Positions 3,296 through 35,790 of a DNA stretch of 64,000 nucleotides are shown one piece after another. The position numbers and the translations under genes are program-made. This DNA comes from Trichoplax adhaerens. Its lineage: Eukaryota; Animalia; Placozoa. The notes beneath the pieces were generated by a model. It saw only the letters and a list, made by a program, of their open reading frames with translations. It was not told the origin of the DNA and did not search any database. The DNA is taken from the NCBI RefSeq assembly GCF_000150275.1, contig NW_002060947.1, positions 7,673,880 through 7,737,879 on the forward strand, written 5' to 3'. Numbering within the stretch: the first letter of the stretch is position 1; every line of letters starts with the position of its first letter.

Positions 3296-3690
3296 TTAAT
3301 ATTAACGTATTGACATGATTTAGTATGACATTTCATATAAAACCTGCAGATTGTAACTGATGTTCATTTAAGTTAATATCGCATTTAATATAATGAAATA
3401 TATGCAGATTATAAAATCGGATTACAGAAGTCTCAAAATTTTAGTGCAACTGCTACACGTCTTTATAGTTGATTTATTTACTACAACGAATATTAATATT
3501 AACGTATTGATATGATTTAGTATGACATTTCATATAAAACCTGTAGATTGTAACTGATGTTCATTTAATTTAATATCACATTTATTGTAATGAAATATAT
3601 GCTGATTATAAAATCAGATTACAAAAGTCTCAAAATTTTAGAGTAACTGCTACACGTATTTATGGTTGATTTATTTTCTACAACGAATAT
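3296..3690. repeat. Direct tandem duplication, 2 x 197 bp
   Basis: Units start ttaatattaacgtattga at 3296 and 3493 and differ by scattered substitutions. Confidence 0.9.
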
Positions 3691-4085
3691 TAATTGCTAC
3701 AGCGTACGTATTTATGGTTGATTTATTTTCTACAACGAATATTAATTGCTATAGCCTACGTATTTATGGTTGATATTTTCGATTCATTTACTACAACGAA
3801 TATTAATTGCTACAAACTACGTATTTATGGTTGATTTATTTTCTACAACGAATATAAATTGCTACAGACTACGTATTTATGGTTGATTTTATTTTCTACA
3901 ACGAATATTAATTGCTACAGACTACGTATTTATGGTTGATTTATTTTCTACAACGAATATTAATTGCTACAGACTACGTATTTATGGTTGATTTATTTTC
4001 TACAACGAATATTAATTGCTACAGCCTACGTATTTATGGTTGATATTTTCGATTCATTTACTACAACGAATATTAATTGCTACAG
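3691..4085. repeat. Minisatellite, 7 units of 52-61 bp plus a partial unit
   Basis: Consensus taattgctacagactacgtatttatggttgatttattttctacaacgaatat. Unit lengths 52, 61, 52, 53, 52, 52, 61. Related to the 3' end of the 197-bp unit. Confidence 0.95.
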
Positions 4086-4180: not shown

Positions 4181-4433
4181 CTGGACATCACTAGCTCAAG
4201 CGTCCCTCTACGGCAATATGGACGCTAAGACAAAAGCACCAGAAAGCGTTTTTAGCCTATCTTGGCTTGTCATCATCACCAATCGTAGGCTGTGATAGGA
4301 CAAAATCGTCATCAGCTTGTTCACGCTTGTCATTTAAATTGCAATTATTGTTGTTTGCTTAGATGAACGATTAATTATCGCTCGTGTATCCGTCGTCAGT
4401 GTTGAATTAATTGATTTGGGTAAGAAATTAGCC

Positions 4434-7400
4434 ATGGCCTTGGTCAGCGATGAAGAATTAAGAGCTAAATTAATTGAATTTGGAGTAGATGTAGGTCCGA
4501 TCGATTCCAATACCAGGAAGATTTATACCAAAAAATTAGATCGTTTGATAGCCAGCAAAACGACTAGCAATAAAAGAACTCCCAAACGAAGTAGTAGAAA
4601 AACAAGAGCAACTCGAAGAACGACAGAGAATGAAGACGAAAATCAAGAAAAGTCAGTCAGTAAGAATACTTCCTTATCCAGCGCTCAAGTGAAACCCATC
4701 CATTCGGAAGAAAGAGTCAGTAGCTCGGTCAGTAAGAGACTCTATCATACTAGCTCTCCAACAGCTCGAGCTGCACAACGACCTGTCGTCATGACTAGAA
4801 TTAAAGAAACATTTTCTTCGGATGATGATGGACTTACTGTCCAGCGCACCAATATGCAAACAACCACTTCACCTTATTCTAATCCATCAACATTGGTAGC
4901 GCAAAATAAGAAAGTCGATCAGTGGCTAAGTAGTGGTAAACAGGTTCTTCGTCGCAATTTAATGTCTAATTGGGTGAGCCCAGCCAAAGACAATAATTCA
5001 AGTCAAGTCATGCATGATTCCACAGCTCAAGGCAATCAACAAAACGTGCCTAACAATTTAGTCTTACCAAAGTCACAGTATTGGCCTATCGATGCAACTC
5101 CGTTCTTATATCTATTGCTCATTATAATACTCTTGATTGCATTCGCTCGTGTAACCAATGATAGCAAGCAATATAAAGTACTATCGAAGGATATACCACA
5201 AGGTAAATGTTATCATTTTCTTATCATGTGCATCACTTCATTTTCATGGATGCTTTAGTTCATGTTGCTTACAATGGTAGCTCTATAATTGTTTAAAGAG
5301 ATGCTAAAAGTCGTATTGGCCATGTCATCTTCATCATCATAGAATATTGTAAAATAGCATGATATAGCCGACCTAGTCATGGCTACTATTCAACCTATTC
5401 GTTATGAAAATGAAATTTGCACACTTTGTCGCGCTGAGCTGCTTTCTTTCCATTGATCTACAACATCCATAGAATTTATCAACTTAATCCAGAATTTTAA
5501 TTGCAGCTTCTATTAATGCACTACTCAATCATGCATGCAGTATCGGGTACTAGTCGATCCAATAAAAGATGTAAGAAAATCTTCGTAAAAACGATTGCCA
5601 TACGAGTATTCTCAACCAATGATGGTGTAATGCGCAGATCTATCTGTTTGTGCATAACCTTAAAATTAATTAATTGAAAGCTACACTACTGTATTGGTAG
5701 TCATATTGATGATTATATAATAAACTCAATTGGCTAGTAAAAATTGTTATTTATATTACTCGTTTTATGTAATGATCATTACTACTATTGGTGAACTTTT
5801 TGAGCTATATCAATGTAACTTGAAAGTAGCATTGCCTACATCGCGAATCCATGGCCTAGCTACGGTCGTAAAAATGAGTACCAATAGTACAGATAGCAAC
5901 TGTATCGGCTGCAGGTCATTTTATATTCAATCGCTATCTTACAAAAAGTCTTACCCGCTCGGGTATATTTGTTTCGATTCATTTAGATAAACTACTCCAT
6001 GATGTCAGTCGGGAAGAATGTGCAGCAATAATGACGTACCTAATGAAAGGAATCCATAAACAATCAGGTAAACCTTGTAAACGATTTATAAGCAAGCTAT
6101 CAAATTAGCAATTATAATTACTACTAGTTTTCTTACGGCTGGTATGCAACAATCTAGCAAAATACGAATGTACCCGTGGAGTTCCAGAGAGATGGATAAC
6201 TTGGCATCAAGCAACGGAATTAGTAACCGAAGTGGTAACCAATGCCTGCTTTAAACTGTGATATTATGCTCCAAATAATTAGCGAAGATGTTCTACATGC
6301 TACTATCTTTGATTAATTAAAGTTAAAGCTATTCAACTTATCATAATAGCCTAGAGGAAAAGCAACTGCTCTATTTCAGAACTAGTACTTGTATTCTTGG
6401 CTCTTAAAAGTGCCATGAAAATAAGAACTTCTAACAGTTGCTTACTATATAGATGTCCGATCGTACAATTTCAAGTAAAAAGCCGAAAAATGATACTATT
6501 AAAGGCATCCTAAAGTTATTTAGTGACCTAAGCAGTAATTTTCCCGATTGGTGCATAACGTAAGGCGGAAAGTTCTTTTGCTAACATCACGAGCTCGAAC
6601 TTGTTACAATTGCAGCACTGTCAATTAATCTGCTCTAATTTCCTAGCGTTAGCGAAAGTGGCGTTGAAAATGTAACATATCACTTTCAATCTTGCCGGTC
6701 GGCCAATTTTGGATGTGTATTGTGGCGACTTGTTCAAAACTCCTTCTACTTATTCCTTGTTGTATCGATAGGTACTGCATACATAGCTGAGTAGGAAACT
6801 TTATTTAATGATAAAATTGTCTCGCAAAGATATCGCATTCTTTTATTTTTAAATTAACTCTAAGGGTATTTTATATTTCGCTTCGTATAGTGGTTATCCC
6901 TTGTTATACATATTATACTTGGTCGGAGGAACGAAAAAGAGCGCATAAAAGATGGTCTATAGAGCTTTATAAACTGATCGATCGGATTATCGGTACAATA
7001 AGCTATAGAAATGGTAATTCTAATCTTAATCTTAGTTCATTTTCGATTTATGACTTACATTTTATTATAGAGGTTGTCCGTACGCATTATACTGATAGCA
7101 TGAATTCCGGCGACGCTTTACCATACGTTGCAGTTTCTCACGTGCGCGACATATTAATACCACCCATTCAGAGGTATTCTTGTTGTACTAGGTATTATTT
7201 CCATGTCTGGTAGTAAACTGATAGTATTGTAACCTTTTATAACATTAACATAGACAACGAAAGCGCAAACTGTGGAATGAGGCCGCCAACTACGTCAGCA
7301 AGAACGATTCCCGTGTAAGGCTAGAAACACAAAGAATTGCTGGTGAAGATTTTGAGGTCTGGCGATGGACCTGTCAATCAAGTCCTGCATTGAACCACAA

Positions 7401-7920
7401 ATTTAAATCATTATATTCTAGCTTACCTATTGAAAAAAATTCAGAAATTGAGCAGTTAGTTGTGCCTGGAATTGGGTTTAAAGTTTGGCAAGGGCAAATA
7501 AAACACACTAATAATATAATATCGAGGACGATTGAATGTAACGACAGTTGCTGCTTAAAGTTAGGGAATATGTTTGATTATGAGCTTGAAAGTGGTAGTG
7601 ACTGGACCAGTAGAATACAAGATGCCATTCTGGAAAAGTGTGGAGACAGCAGTAGCATAGTCCATATACATGTGGAAAGGTATTCTAATCGTGGTTCAGT
7701 TTACATCAAGTGTAGTCAAATAGAAGATGCCAAAGAGACATTTAAAGCTATGCATGGCTGTATATTTGACGGTAGGATAGTTCGAGCTAGATTTATAAGT
7801 AATCAGACATATCACAGCTTGTTTCCAGATGCAGCAAAATTTAGCGAGCCGTTGAAGCCTTCAAATGATTCCGTGAGATCAATGATATTTCTTGCTGAAG
7901 CGAATATATATCTAAGTTAA
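4434..7920 (+). CDS. LEMD3: Inner nuclear membrane protein MAN1 (LEM, 2 TM, MSC, UHM/RRM), multi-exon
   Basis: N-terminal LEM domain (SDEELRAKLIEFGVDVGPIDSNTRKIYTKKL), TM segments, MSC motif PYVAVSHVRDILIPP...ETQRIAGEDFEVWRW, KVWQGQ and a C-terminal RRM-like domain. Approximate exons: 4434-5202, 5507-~5539, 5987-6067, 6158-6231, 6453-6559, 6647-6770, 6891-6991, 7071-7173, 7254-7920. Confidence 0.93.
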
Positions 7921-10630
7921 ACTCACAACAACGGATGGCTTTCTGATATCGAGGTGCAATTGAAACTGACGTTGTTATAGTTTTACCGTTCCTAATTCGG
8001 TGTTATTACTTAACTTTGAAGCATTTAATGGAGAGAATTGGCATTGATGATGTTCCTATACTGGTTCAAAGCTGGTATACTATGAATACATAGATACTAG
8101 CTACACAAATATTGTACATTCAGATTCTAACATAAAAATGGTCGAAATTTTCTTCCGCTTTTACATTATAACACTATTGTATAAAAGCTCTTACGAATTC
8201 CATGTAAAGTTTGTAAGTTACTGCGGCTCGCTTGTTATCTTCTTGCGCTAGATCACAAGAATTTGTCAGATCTAAAATTTAATACTTGATGAATTGTAAC
8301 CTCAGTTGAACTGTTATCTGTAACTACATAATTTTAGCGTGTGATATTTGTATCGCTAATACAACGTAAGTATACTGATTTTAAATTCTCTTTGCGAAAC
8401 TGCAACTTTTCGAAAAACTATAAATGATTGTCTAATTCTTGAGATATTTAACATCAGAGGTCAGATGCTGAGAAGATTATGATACTATGATTTTAATACG
8501 ACTTGTGTGATGGTCTTTAACTTCATCTTAGCTTAAAAATAAGCTTTCAAAATCATTATAAAATATAATGTTAATCAAATCAGAAAACCTGCATTTTTAC
8601 GCTCGCGCATTGTTGCTGGGTATGTTGTTGTGGCCGAAATATTGCATGCAATGACAATGTTCACAAATATATAAGTAATTTGTTACTGACCATAAATGCA
8701 CTTACCATTATTCCTCGCAGCATGACACGAGATGACCTTTAATACGAGATCTTTGCTGTAAAATAGTGAACCTTTTGTGCATCTACATAAACAGTAGCTC
8801 TGAGTAACAAAGTATGGATGCATGCATTGTCAACTTTTAAAATACCGCTTACGAATGTGTGCTGTATAGTTGCAATCAGCTCTAATAATAAATATTTTAT
8901 CAATGATTGAATTAGATGAATAATAGGCCTGCAGATTACTGAAAGTTTCTGTAGTTATGCTGCGACAGTTGTCATTTTACTAAATATTGCAAACAAATTT
9001 ATGGAGCTGCCTTCCACCTCAAACAGCGTCATTGAATTAATCAGAGACTGACGTAAATTGTGATTATATGCACGTATGTGCCTATTTACTACTCAGATAA
9101 CTATAAATAAATGAAAATATTTTAATGACTCTCGAAAGGAATTAGCTAAAAATTATAATTTCGCCTCAAAATACGCTAACTACATTAAATATCGCTTTTT
9201 AACACCCATAAATACGTGATATTATTCATCCTGTAATGCATAATCTTCAGTTATGGTACAGTATTATCGACAGCTTAACCGACAGACCAATAAATACGTG
9301 TATATACATAAGACTAGAATTACACTTACTAGTCCTACAACCTATCGTGTTACTGACTGTAAATATGTGAGAGTTGTCATTCAACAATGACCCATTGCAT
9401 CTCGAATACATCATAACCCATGTATACCTATAGTATATCATGGGCTGCAAGATGCACTAGTACATCTACTGTAGTAGTCCATATCTACATTAAGTGCAAT
9501 ATTTCCTGTTCAACAGCTGATCAGCTGACGATTGTTCGATAATCTCGTATACTATACATTTAAAAATTTCAGCAAAATAAAAATTTGATGTACCCCTACC
9601 AAGCAGCGCACATGTGATATTGACATTGACGATGCGACACATGGCTGTCTACAAATGAGTCCTGATGATTATTTTTAGTCCTCATTTTTACATCTCGCAT
9701 AACCAGAAAAGAGGCTTCTAAAGAAAACCACGTAGGAAAGTAGATACAACAAAGTTCTATAAGATTAATCAATCAGTTGTATATATAAATATCTACGTTA
9801 CATAACTATAGTCTATATATACATGGTTCAATATAGTCCTTTATTCTTCAATTCTGTCATTAAAATACTACATTTTTTTCGGAGTAAAGCTTGCTAATAA
9901 ATACAGTACATCAACTATGGTATTTGTTAAGGCTAAAATTAATAATACTAGGTACGGCTCCTATTTCCCTTAATTTATAATCATTGCATTTGGTCTATCC
10001 CGTTGTTCATTTTGTAGTATTTCCAAAATTCCCGAACTAATATGACAGTATTATATGATAGTTATTATTTGTTCATATATAGTTTGCAAGAAATCGAATT
10101 AAATTGGATATCTTATGCCAAGCCATTGATACAGGAACTCCTTAATTTGCTTTAAATATGTCAATATTGCTGTGATCATATAAGCGGAAAAAAGCATAGA
10201 TATCTCACTGTAGATTTGTAGCATAAAGGTTCAATTTTTTGGATAGATAATAGTTTTATTTATACTTGAATGGAGTATTTTCAAATAATTTGGATCAACT
10301 ACAAAGACAAGACAAGGATCACTGACTCATTATCTTTTTAGTCTTTATACTATGATATATTAAAGGAATTACAGTAGAGATTTAAATCATTATAATTAAA
10401 ATCCGCTTATCATTATTTTATCCTTTAGATTTTTTTGGAATTGTCCAAGTGATAGATGAAGATTAGTTCTTTCGGCACCCTCAATTTTATCATTCATAAT
10501 ATAATTAATGCAGAATAAATCCCTAATTTTTTAATATTATTCAATTAAGAATCTGCACATTTTCATTTCGTGTTCCCATCCTTTTGTAGCAATCGAGAAC
10601 TCTTCGGCTAGTTTGAGATAATTCAGTTTC

Positions 10631-12270
10631 TTAGTTAATATTTTCGGTTGTCCTTTTAAATGGAAACATGCCAGGTAGATTATCTTCTCTTTTAAATGGA
10701 TACCATTTGCGTTGATTATCTCCTCTTTTAAATGGAAACATGCCTGGTAGATTATCTTCTCTTTTAAATGGATACCATTTGCGTTGATTATCTCCTCTTT
10801 TAAATGGAAACATGCCTGGTAGATCATCTTCCCTTTTAAATGGATACCATTTACGTTGACTATCTCCTCTTTTAAATGGAAACATTCCTGGTAGGTCATC
10901 TCCTCTTTTAAATGGAAACATTCCTGGTAGATCATCTTCTCTTTTAAATGGATACCATTTACGTTGATTATCTCCTCTTTTAAATGGAAACATGCCTGGT
11001 AGGTTATCTTCTTTTTTAAATGGATACCATTTGCGTTGATTATCTCCTCTTTTAAACGGAAACATGCCTGGTAGATCATCTTCTCTTTTAAATGGAAACA
11101 TGCCAGGCAGATTGTCTTCTTTTTTAAACGGAAACATGCCTGGTAGATTGTCTTCTCTTTTAAATGGAAACGTTCCTGGTAGATTATCATCTTTTTTAAA
11201 TGGATACCATTTGAGCTGGTTATCGTCTTTCTTAAATGGATACCATTTTCGTTGGTCAGCATCCTTCTTAAATGGATACCATTTTCGTTGGCCATCTTCT
11301 TTCTTAAACGGATATCGTATTTGTCGGCTATCATGTTCCTTTGAGAGATCTCGCTTATGTTCTTCGTGTTTTTTTGCTTGAATAGCGTCATCTACAAGTT
11401 TTTTATCGTCTTTCTTCTTCTCATGTAAGTCATGAGAAGACATAGCATCAGCAGCTTCACGAGCATGATGATTGCTGCTTCTTGTCTGTGATGACGATTT
11501 CTTTTGATTATTAAGAGAGCTTTCCTTTTCGTCTTCGTTTCGATCTTGGCTCTCATTACTATTACTTGCAGTAAAATCCTTCGCTGAATCCGCAATTGGC
11601 CGATGATGCAAGCCGCTTTCTTTATAGGACAACTTTTGAATTAAATCTTGAAGTCGATGGATTAATCTTGCGCTATTGTCATAGTCAACAATTAGCGGCC
11701 GATTAATTATTAGAGAAATATTATATTCTCATACTCATGAGCAAGAATGCTCTCGCTCTTTATATTAAACAGTTTATCTGGGCAAAATTAGCTAAAGATT
11801 GGATATTATGCTAGAGGTAATCATTCTTTTAGTTTAAATCATTAAAAATAGATGATAAAAAATTGCCGCAATTTCAGTTACGAAAACATAATTTCAATAT
11901 AGAACAAATAATTTACATCTTGTATCAAATTTTTACTACTATTGACATACGTGAGAGTATTTCAATTTAAAATGAAATGAAACGATATCAACTTACATCC
12001 TGATGAACAAAAAAATAACGAAATACTTATTCTTTGAGCTTAGGTATCGAACAGACCCTATCTAATTTGATGTAGTCAATAATTTATTACCTTAATTTAT
12101 TTAGTTATCCTGGCCGACAAGCCTTTTAATGTATTTAACCTGAAGATGAAAATTCCAAAATATGATCAACCCGTCCAGATCAAGCTCTTATATACTGTGC
12201 CGCTGAATATAATTGAAATCACAGCTATTAATAACAAGCCTTCTAGTAAAACAATTTCGATACTAACCAT
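10631..12270 (-). CDS. Secreted neuropeptide precursor of the MFPF/WYPF type, ~383 aa, 3 coding exons
   Basis: Exon 12270-12196 gives a signal peptide (MVSIEIVLLEGLLLIAVISIIFSGT). Exons 12061-12027 and 11672-10631 join in phase through GT-AG introns. 19 peptides are flanked by KK/KR: 10 xDxLPG(M/T)FPF, 8 xxxQ(R/L)KWYPF and 1 QIRYPF. None has a C-terminal Gly, so they are not amidated. Confidence 0.92.
10652..11325 (-). repeat. Coding 36-bp tandem repeat (12-aa peptide cassettes)
   Basis: About 19 units of two sequence types; the C-terminal part alternates as a 72-bp higher-order unit. Confidence 0.95.
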
Positions 12271-18200: not shown

Positions 18201-19457
18201 TTATTTCTAAATTATGTATATGAGTTCGTTTTAACTACTTTAGTTACGTCTAGACATAGCTATTATAATGAAATAATTTTTGGTACATATATAGTGCAAT
18301 TCACTTGCTTTTATTTCATCGCTTTCTACCAGTAGCAGAAAATCTCGTTAGCATAAATTATTCTAATGCTCTCTTCTACATCTAAGAGATGCCTTTAAAA
18401 TAAATGATCAGACTATCCTTTACGAAATCGTAGCGGATGAAAAGATTGAATAATTATGAAATTTTTCTGTTTAGCTTGCCTCTCATCTAGTATATAGTAT
18501 TAAAGACCAGTAGTAGAGTTTTCGATCAAATTAAATCACAGAAGTTAAGATTTACTTGTCAGTAGACCTCTTTTGTCCTTTTAAGCTCAATCTGACCTTA
18601 ATTTCCACTTCTGAAAGGCTTTATTCAAAAATTAGGCTTCTTAACTTTTATAATTACTGTACAATAATTGAAAATTTTAATAACCATGGGAGGCTACTAT
18701 AACCATGCACAATTTTCGTGCAATACAATTAATGTAATTTAATCTTTAATACAACATGTATGTTCGCAGAAATTTCCCGTTTACTGTCATTCGTAAGTCT
18801 TGACCTATATCTTTGTCTTCAATCACGAATCTCTAGTCGAAAAATAAAATATAGAAATTAAACTGGACTTTTGGATCTTACTATTTATTTCCAATTGGAA
18901 ATAAAAAGATCCTCAATATTCATACTAATAATACATATTAATTAATGAATAATTCCGAGAAACTAGTGCAAGTATGGTACATTGTTTTAAATCTATATCT
19001 ATGAATGTATTCGCTCATTATCCACTTACAACTAGTAAGCAACAAAAATATACTGCAAAATTTTCATACTATTGCATCCCTTCATAATGATCACTAAATA
19101 TCTAATAATGTGAGATCAAATTTTGAAGAGAATAGCTTAATTTTGACTTTAAATAATTCATATATCTTACGACTAGTACAACGATATTGTACATCTATCT
19201 CTATCAAATGAATAAATGTCCTTATTAAATTTTAAAACTAAAAGTACTAACTACAGCAAAATTGAATCGCAAAATGATTAACCGTGTAATAAGCTATAAA
19301 ATACTTGGGTCGAAATAATCGAGTCTAAATCAGTTCTTTCTGACTAAAATTAAGCTGTTCAGCCCTATATGCAGCAATACATAATTATTATAATTCAATT
19401 TAAGTACAGAACCAATATTATTTTTATTTCCGTATTTTATGAAACTGTAGCAAGGAT

Positions 19458-19594
19458 NNNNNNNNNNNNNNNNNNNNNNNNNNNNNNNNNNNNNNNNNNN
19501 NNNNNNNNNNNNNNNNNNNNNNNNNNNNNNNNNNNNNNNNNNNNNNNNNNNNNNNNNNNNNNNNNNNNNNNNNNNNNNNNNNNNNNNNNNNNNN
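19458..19594. other. Assembly gap (137 N)
   Basis: Run of n characters. Confidence 1.
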
Positions 19595-20140
19595 GAAATA
19601 ATATATTAATTTATTATTGTTAGTATCAATGTGGTAACTATGCAATAATATTGCGAACTAAATATGGAAAATAATAATATATTACTTCAGAAAGTTATAC
19701 GCACTTTTACTCTCCAAATAAAACTAATGAAAAAAAAGATTAAGCTAAAATGTTGGCATTTATCAGAATTGAGGCTCTCTCTGACGTAAAATCTATCGGG
19801 TACATTCCTTGAGGTTAAAATAGATACTTTACGTAAGAATCATCGTAACTGATATCAGTTAGCCAATTAATCATACTATCATTAATATTAGTATTTGATT
19901 GATAGCTTAATCTGTAATATCTTAATTTTACGAATTTAGTTTTACGTCTTCCTTATATTGTATTTCAAACGTTAAATAATTTTACTCGCATTTTTATGTT
20001 ATAATAATGGAATCTTCACTAAAAATAACGATAGAAATAGGGATTGAAGAGATACCTATCAATTCGCAAATAATTTATTTAACATAGCTTCTAGCAGCTG
20101 TTGTTGCTAACTAGTAGACATCCATATGTGCAAATCGGCA

Positions 20141-35199: not shown

Positions 35200-35790
35200 A
35201 GCTATTTGAAGACTATAAGTTCAGAAGCAAACGCCTACATGCAATGAAAAAATCCTGTACTACAGTATGTGCAGGTGCAGTACTACGTGTTGATGGCAAA
35301 TATAAAAAGTGGTGATTATAGAGATTAAATATGAATTCATGTGTAAACATCAAATTAAAGTCATTACGCAGGTGCTTGGCATAAATAGTACATAAAAGTG
35401 AGATAGTAAATCTTTTAAACTGGCAACATTAGCCGTTATCTATTTAATGGAAGGGGAAAATTTTTAGTAGCCAGGCAGTCTGGGCTAGTGTACTTACGGA
35501 ACAAAATATCCACTAAAGCCGCAACTAGCAAATATGAAACTATGGAAGCTAAAGCATAAGGTCTACATGCACCGAAAAATGTGTATCGTATGCAGGTTTA
35601 ATATTGTGTACTAGATGCAAGTATTAAATTACATCAGCAGTACGGTGTAAAATACTCACTTAAACCACAACTAGCAAATATGAAGTCATGATTGCTAAAG
35701 CAGAAGCCTACATGTACTGCAAAATGCGTATCATTAGCAGGTCTAATATAGTGCATTGAATGCAAGTATTAAGTTGAAGCAGCAGTTGTC
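35200..35790. repeat. Diverged ~150-bp repeat, two clear copies and one older copy
   Basis: 35514-35641 and 35661-35786 share caactagcaaatatgaa...gctaaagca...ctacatg...gcaggt...atgcaagtattaa...cagcagt. A weaker copy lies near 35200-35305. Confidence 0.7.

Follow-up and report, generated by a model that had tools for sequence, protein, structure and literature searches.

The MFPF/WYPF propeptide gene of Trichoplax adhaerens, very probably the ortholog of a published gene of Trichoplax sp. H2

'MFPF' was introduced as a new Trichoplax peptide in Varoqueaux 2018 (10.1101/360925), where synthetic EDDLPGMFPF applied to Trichoplax caused flattening, tighter rim adhesion, and changed churning. Table S5 of Najle 2023 (Cell; PMC10580291) lists a precursor for it, the gene TrH2_TrispH2_003760 of the sister species Trichoplax sp. 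H2, in an orthogroup (OG_1564) with members in T. adhaerens, Trichoplax sp. H2, Hoilungia hongkongensis, and Hoilungia H23. TrispH2_003760 is SignalP-positive without a transmembrane segment, and its orthogroup is flagged 'nosignature' in H2; the OG_1564 gene models of H2 and Hoilungia have the SignalP label 'wSP'. Among cell types, expression of TrispH2_003760 is highest in, and specific to, peptidergic_kappa cells (fold change 158). Mass spectrometry (MS) of H2 in the same study recovered LPGMFPFK, Met-oxidised as well as plain, in the context [NDE].LPGMFPFK.[KR] (3 spectra in Proteome Discoverer, abundance percentile 0.55), and QRKWYPFK with its N-terminal Gln converted to pyro-Glu, in the context [DN].QRKWYPFK.[KR] (1 spectrum, percentile 0.013). 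Both forms carry one C-terminal Lys. Also recovered were pieces of the pro-region of this gene (NEDEKESSLNNQ, AADAMSSHDLHE, and RPITDSAKDFTASNSNESQD) and its C-terminal remnant, TTENIN. The word 'trypsin' is found 0 times in that paper's main text, which mentions no protease digestion, so the ends of the H2 peptides appear to be endogenous.

The curated set of 60 peptides in the same work (PMC10580291) includes QRKWYPFK (H2NP032), EDDLPGMFPF (H2NP033, tagged 'previously described' and without spectra), and LPGMFPFK (H2NP034). Each curated peptide was docked in silico with 207 receptors; the sole positive for this gene paired LPGMFPFK with TrispH2_004656, an adhesion-type GPCR of the dorsal epithelium (pDockQ 0.303), and QRKWYPFK had zero positives. 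The precursor, both peptide classes, their N-terminal trimming, the pyroglutamate (pGlu) cap, and the expressing cell type are thus already published. The WYPF peptide is published solely in the supplementary table, where it is unnamed; within the searchable literature, 'WYPF' is absent from the main text of placozoan papers, and we found neither a receptor nor a bioassay for it.

We have analysed a window (the whole stretch of DNA, 64,000 nt, in which all positions below are counted) of the T. adhaerens genome. On its minus strand lies what is very probably the T. adhaerens (H1) MFPF/WYPF propeptide gene, the ortholog of Trichoplax sp. H2 TrispH2_003760 (OG_1564). The features of the gene, in the order of the putative transcript, are these:

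12196 to 12270, minus strand: candidate exon 1 with the start codon, predicted from the position of the ATG, hydrophobicity, and donors.
11997 to 12061, minus strand: candidate exon 2, 65 nt, predicted by splice-compatible exon enumeration and reading IGSVRYLSSKNKYFVIFLFIR plus 2 bases.
10631 to 11672, minus strand: main (last) coding exon, an open frame with the pro-region, an array of 19 cassettes, the C-terminal TTENIN, and a TAA stop (10633-10631); its 5' end is a best guess.
11324 to 11650, minus strand: charged pro-region, recognised by matches to Trichoplax sp. H2 MS peptides.
10652 to 11323, minus strand: cassette array, in which cassette 1 (QIRYPF) is followed by 18 units of 36 nt, from Tandem Repeats Finder (TRF) and parsing of the translation.
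10634 to 10651, minus strand: C-terminal remnant TTENIN behind the final KR, an exact match to an H2 MS peptide.
10530 to 10535, minus strand: candidate poly(A) signal ATTAAA, ~100 nt past the stop, by consensus match.

With one mismatch allowed, LPGMFPFK occurs 10 times in the window and QRKWYPFK 8 times. The site columns of Table S5 read 10/11/0/0 for LPGMFPFK and 8/8/0/0 for QRKWYPFK, the T. adhaerens entries being 10 and 8 (PMC10580291); this agreement in counts, together with the peptide matches, identifies the locus as the H1 ortholog of the published gene. The H2 MS peptides NEDEKESSLNNQ and AADAMSSHDLHE are matched exactly at 11539-11504 and 11455-11420 on the minus strand, as is TTENIN, and RPIADSAK... 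(11602-11543) has 1 mismatch, A for T, to the H2 20-mer RPIT.... The two genes are alike in having both peptide classes, 8 WYPF sites, the C-terminal TTENIN, and the same two exact pro-region peptides; they differ in the number of MFPF-type sites (11 in H2 versus 10 in T. adhaerens) and in RPIT versus RPIA within the pro-region. The array encodes EDDLPGMFPF exactly three times, and six more times with one mismatch.

An earlier reading of this DNA, made from the sequence only, stated that an MFPF peptide had been reported from Trichoplax. This was correct, as the EDDLPGMFPF assay of Varoqueaux 2018 and the precursor in Table S5 of Najle 2023 attest. The same reading looked to peptidomics for both peptide types, and both are indeed in the published H2 MS data, as LPGMFPFK and pyroGlu-QRKWYPFK. 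It had also held that prior characterisation of both peptides would remove the novelty; both have been described before, so the novelty is gone and the discovery value of the locus is small, gene and peptides alike being in the literature already. A word-index protein search with the whole open reading frame (ORF), with ORF residues 1-150, or with a 135-aa pro-region query gave no match, and it likewise missed the H2 ortholog; since a known ortholog was missed, the collection evidently lacks placozoan proteins, and such blanks are uninformative on novelty. There was also no match in an exact-product look-up of the protein from the first in-frame Met, or in scans of metagenome DNA with a unique pro-region 30-mer and a degenerate MFPF-spacer-WYPF pattern.

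The ORF listing gives the minus-strand ORF at 10631-11632 as 333 aa from a TTG, and the same frame is open back to 11728, a total of 365 codons; from window composition, the chance of so many stop-free codons is ~2e-13. Further reading frames across the repeat are likewise open. TRF reports a 36-nt period of ~17 copies and a higher-order 180-nt period at 10653-11314. By translation and parsing there are 19 cassettes: nine LPGMFPF, one LPGTFPF, seven QRKWYPF, one QLKWYPF, and one QIRYPF. Cassettes 2-19 are exact 36-nt units, each with a spacer of 3 aa, a core of 7 aa, and K[KR]. The dibasic KK or KR follows directly on 19 of 19 cores, and Gly precedes the dibasic pair at 0 of 19. With no Gly ahead of the basic site, none of the 19 peptides is amidated. 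The sequence-only reading had counted 19 non-amidated peptides in two types at about 10:8, and our own count (10 LPG[M/T]FPF, 8 Q[R/L]KWYPF, and 1 QIRYPF) bears this out. It had also called LPGMFPF acidic, which is incorrect for the mature LPGMFPF(K): the acidity of the cassette sits in the three-residue spacer (E/G-D-N/D), which is removed.

The nine LPGMFPF cores differ at 4 sites, all of them third-position synonymous (CTA/CTG, CCA/CCT, GGA/GGC, and CCA/CCG), and among the seven QRKWYPF cores the sole variable codon is that for Arg (CGA/CGC/CGT). Such third-position synonymous variation picks out this reading frame. Non-synonymous changes in cores are confined to the two variants LPGTFPF (Met to Thr, codon position 2) and QLKWYPF (Arg to Leu, positions 2 and 3), and the spacer codons do vary non-synonymously. 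Judged by codon variation, purifying selection evidently acts on both cores but not on the spacer.

Reading R for QIRYPF, W for the WYPF type, M for LPGMFPF, and T for LPGTFPF, the cassettes run R W W W T M M M W M W M M W M W M W M. Strict W/M alternation is limited to the 3' half of the array. Over the whole array, which the earlier reading described as two interleaved types, there are 12 runs (P = 0.22 by shuffling), and we reject interleaving beyond chance at that scale. Cassettes 16 and 18 are identical at 36 of 36 positions, and cassettes 15 and 17 at 35 of 36. The recurrence of near-identical cassettes in the 3' half suggests recent duplication of W-M pairs.

The frame of the repeat exon has its first in-frame ATG at 11443, with none between there and 11728. 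H2 MS peptides lie upstream of this Met, so the start codon must be supplied by an upstream exon. Moreover, QDLIQKLSY (11650-11624) aligns at 7 of 9 positions to the Hoilungia MS peptide pQNLIQKLSH. Because it matches an expressed peptide, this stretch is exonic, and the exon begins upstream of 11650 rather than at the TTG at 11632. Possible acceptors are at 11727 (phase 1), 11672 (phase 2, the only YAG), and 11666 (phase 2), and the true 5' start of the repeat exon would thus fall between 11727 and 11651. Our best guess is the second of these acceptors, with its TAG at 11674-11673.

Candidate exon 2 has the strongest donor in the region, a perfect GAT|GTAAGT with 11997 as the last exon base, and its donor phase fits the 11672 acceptor. 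It contains the hydrophobic run YFVIFLFI. The ATG at 12270 is the only one in 12270-11997, and of the ATG-initiated pieces within 5 kb upstream, the one that it opens is the best hydrophobic one. Exon 1 could then take two forms: 75 nt encoding a signal-like hydrophobic MVSIEIV...IIFSGT, with the weak donor ACA|GTATAT, or the bare ATG (12270-12268), with the strong donor ATG|GTTAGT directly after it. Two gene models follow. Model A, which we place slightly above the other, would join 12270-12196 (signal-like, with the weak GTATAT donor), 12061-11997, and 11672-10631. Model B would join the ATG only to the same two downstream exons and take YFVIFLFI as the core of the signal peptide. A two-exon model running from 12196 to the TTG at 11632 was rejected, as it would leave QDLIQK intronic despite the expressed Hoilungia match.

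Two further observations concern this upstream region. A TATA-box-like TATATAAG lies at 12194-12187 on the minus strand, coinciding exactly with the weak donor of the first candidate exon. We reject it as a TATA box, because upstream of the MS-confirmed pro-region the resulting transcript would lack any start codon that it could use, and its placement is probably fortuitous. Directly behind the candidate start codon, 271 nt (12267-11997, minus strand) are free of ATG. We do not take this as a signal, since, of 1213 gaps between ATGs on the window's minus strand, 10 are at least that long; it is probably chance, though a constraint on the 5' leader could also produce it.

Elsewhere in the window, the 280-aa ORF at 4416-5258 (plus strand), with a LEM domain at its N terminus (PF03020, E = 3e-14) and a hydrophobic segment at its C terminus, resembles an exon of a LEM protein of the inner nuclear membrane. 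Downstream of it, the ORF at 7390-7920 (plus strand) had no Pfam match. Tandem arrays of non-coding appearance occupy 3296-4085, with two copies of a 197-nt unit and then ~8 copies of a 52-nt unit (90% matches), and a 145-nt unit occurs twice at 35503-35786 (77% matches). A run of N at ~19400-19600 (assembly gap or masked) gives X in translations. Searches of the window for tRNA and Rfam families found none.

In the processing route that we propose, the precursor would enter the secretory pathway by means of a signal peptide, here encoded by the candidate upstream exons, in peptidergic cells of a rare type, which the published expression data identify as kappa in H2. Proprotein convertases would cut at the K-K and K-R pairs present in the sequence; the convertase P-domain P_proprotein (PF01483) occurs at three loci in this genome. 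Carboxypeptidase trimming would be incomplete or halt early, because the MS-detected forms retain one Lys. The 3-residue acidic/Asn spacer would be stripped from the N terminus by unorthodox processing of the cnidarian/placozoan type, at the cleavage positions given by MS. N-terminal processing at acidic/Asn residues is common to cnidarians and placozoans, and Trichoplax has a glutaminyl cyclase, according to a review (PMC9545775). Trimming would end at an X-Pro N terminus (Leu-Pro-Gly-) or at Gln, with X-Pro or pGlu as the putative block to a putative trimming enzyme, and the exposed Gln would cyclise to the pyroGlu that is seen by MS. The sequence-only reading had foreseen spacer trimming to pGlu-RKWYPF. 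Trimming and pGlu have both been seen by MS in H2, but the form detected there keeps one Lys.

Each precursor would yield ~10 LPG(M/T)FPF(K) and ~8-9 pQ(R/L)KWYPF(K)/pQIRYPF(K), to be released together and to act as paracrine signals. As both come from one polypeptide, one would expect the same cell to release them at roughly 10:8-9. We infer, as had the earlier reading, that WYPF is a co-released second ligand; the two peptides may be packaged together and have separate receptors. We further propose, tentatively and at somewhat less than an even chance, that pQRKWYPF(K) acts as a ligand in its own right, through a receptor of its own and with a behavioural effect unlike that of LPGMFPF(K), and that the native Lys-extended and pGlu forms are the active species, rather than the EDD-extended synthetic peptide. 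If this is true, one rare cell type broadcasts two messages at ~1:1, the ratio being set by gene architecture. The sole bioassay used EDDLPGMFPF, with the acidic spacer still in place and without the Lys; it is a form without MS detection, unlike LPGMFPFK and pQRKWYPFK.

It could instead be that only the MFPF-type peptide signals, the WYPF cassettes being by-products or spacers without a receptor of their own. QRKWYPFK, with its single spectrum at percentile 0.013 against three at 0.55 for LPGMFPFK, its absence from the positive docking list, and no bioassay in the searchable literature, fits such a role, as does the WYPS that Hoilungia has in place of WYPF; a short basic peptide may, however, ionise or recover poorly. 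We consider a by-product role unlikely, given that the seven copies are identical in amino acids while their Arg codon takes three synonymous forms, that 8 sites are found in H1 and in H2 alike, and that the clean dibasic flanks and pGlu cap are like those of bona fide placozoan peptides. A cationic, aromatic pQRKWYPFK might also be a secreted defensive (antimicrobial) peptide that carries no cell-to-cell signal, a role to which its composition alone would point (its net charge is positive, and it has Trp, Tyr, and Phe). This is very improbable: an antimicrobial peptide of 7-8 residues would be very short, expression of the gene is in a type of peptidergic cell alongside other signalling propeptides, and the precursor is shared with the behaviourally active MFPF peptide.

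On residues 213-349 of the open frame at 10634-11728, Pfam places RDM3_C (PF23348), with E = 5.9e-12 and a score of 46.5 bits, above the curated cut-off of 35. Because the plant nuclear protein RDM3/KTF1 has tandem repeats rich in Trp and Gly, the PF23348 match is likely one of repeat on repeat and a false family call. That the repeat region is a folded RDM3_C-like beta-solenoid protein with no cleavable peptides, as this match would have it, is barely credible in view of the dibasic site every 12 residues, the apparently undigested 8-residue products found by MS in H2, and a single-sequence AlphaFold2 (AF2) model with pLDDT ~40 and no strands across the array (a weak test). The AF2 model does have two helices in the pro-region.

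The reading of the locus as a two-peptide propeptide gene can be set against other aromatic-Pro-Phe peptides of Trichoplax. Its endomorphin-like QDYPFFamide and its WPPF carry YPF and PPF motifs, as the peptides here do, and affect gliding and feeding-like behaviour. They are, however, encoded by other genes, and the endomorphin-like peptide is active mainly when amidated. We take this likeness as a lead, not as homology. The cassette gene itself is single-copy in the assembly (105,631,681 bp in 1414 contigs), with no paralog detectable in the genome. Among cnidarian and placozoan multi-copy preprohormones, those of Antho-RFamide and PRWamide (PMC9545775) share with the T. adhaerens precursor the many tandem copies, the C-terminal basic site, N-terminal cleavage after Asp, Asn, or Glu, and the pGlu cap. 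Unlike them, the T. adhaerens array has no Gly or amidation and interleaves two unrelated cores.

Outside Trichoplax, the OG_1564 ortholog of Hoilungia hongkongensis, Hhon_g05652.t1, has yielded the MS peptides pQNLIQKLSH, ILASNINENQD, TPAKSELVA, (AD)IEGKWYPS, and HDKPGTFPF (PMC10580291). In the pro-region, ILASNINENQD aligns at 7 of 11 positions to FTASNSNESQD of T. adhaerens, and the Hoilungia gene carries PGTFPF-type and KWYP-type peptides, as the T. adhaerens gene does. Its cores have diverged, with HDKPGTFPF and IEGKWYPS each having one match in their own gene and WYPS standing in place of WYPF; its top cell type is 'eta', as against 'kappa' in H2. The single LPGTFPF cassette of T. adhaerens has the Thr of the Hoilungia type. 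From these supplement peptides, rather than from full-sequence alignment, the Met form looks peculiar to Trichoplax, as does the high copy number. On the same basis, since both motif classes occur in both genera, the two-peptide design appears to be older than the split between Trichoplax and Hoilungia. A design of such age within Placozoa would offer a simple case in which to ask what purpose it serves, in an animal that has no neurons, for a single cell to release two unrelated peptides in fixed proportion.
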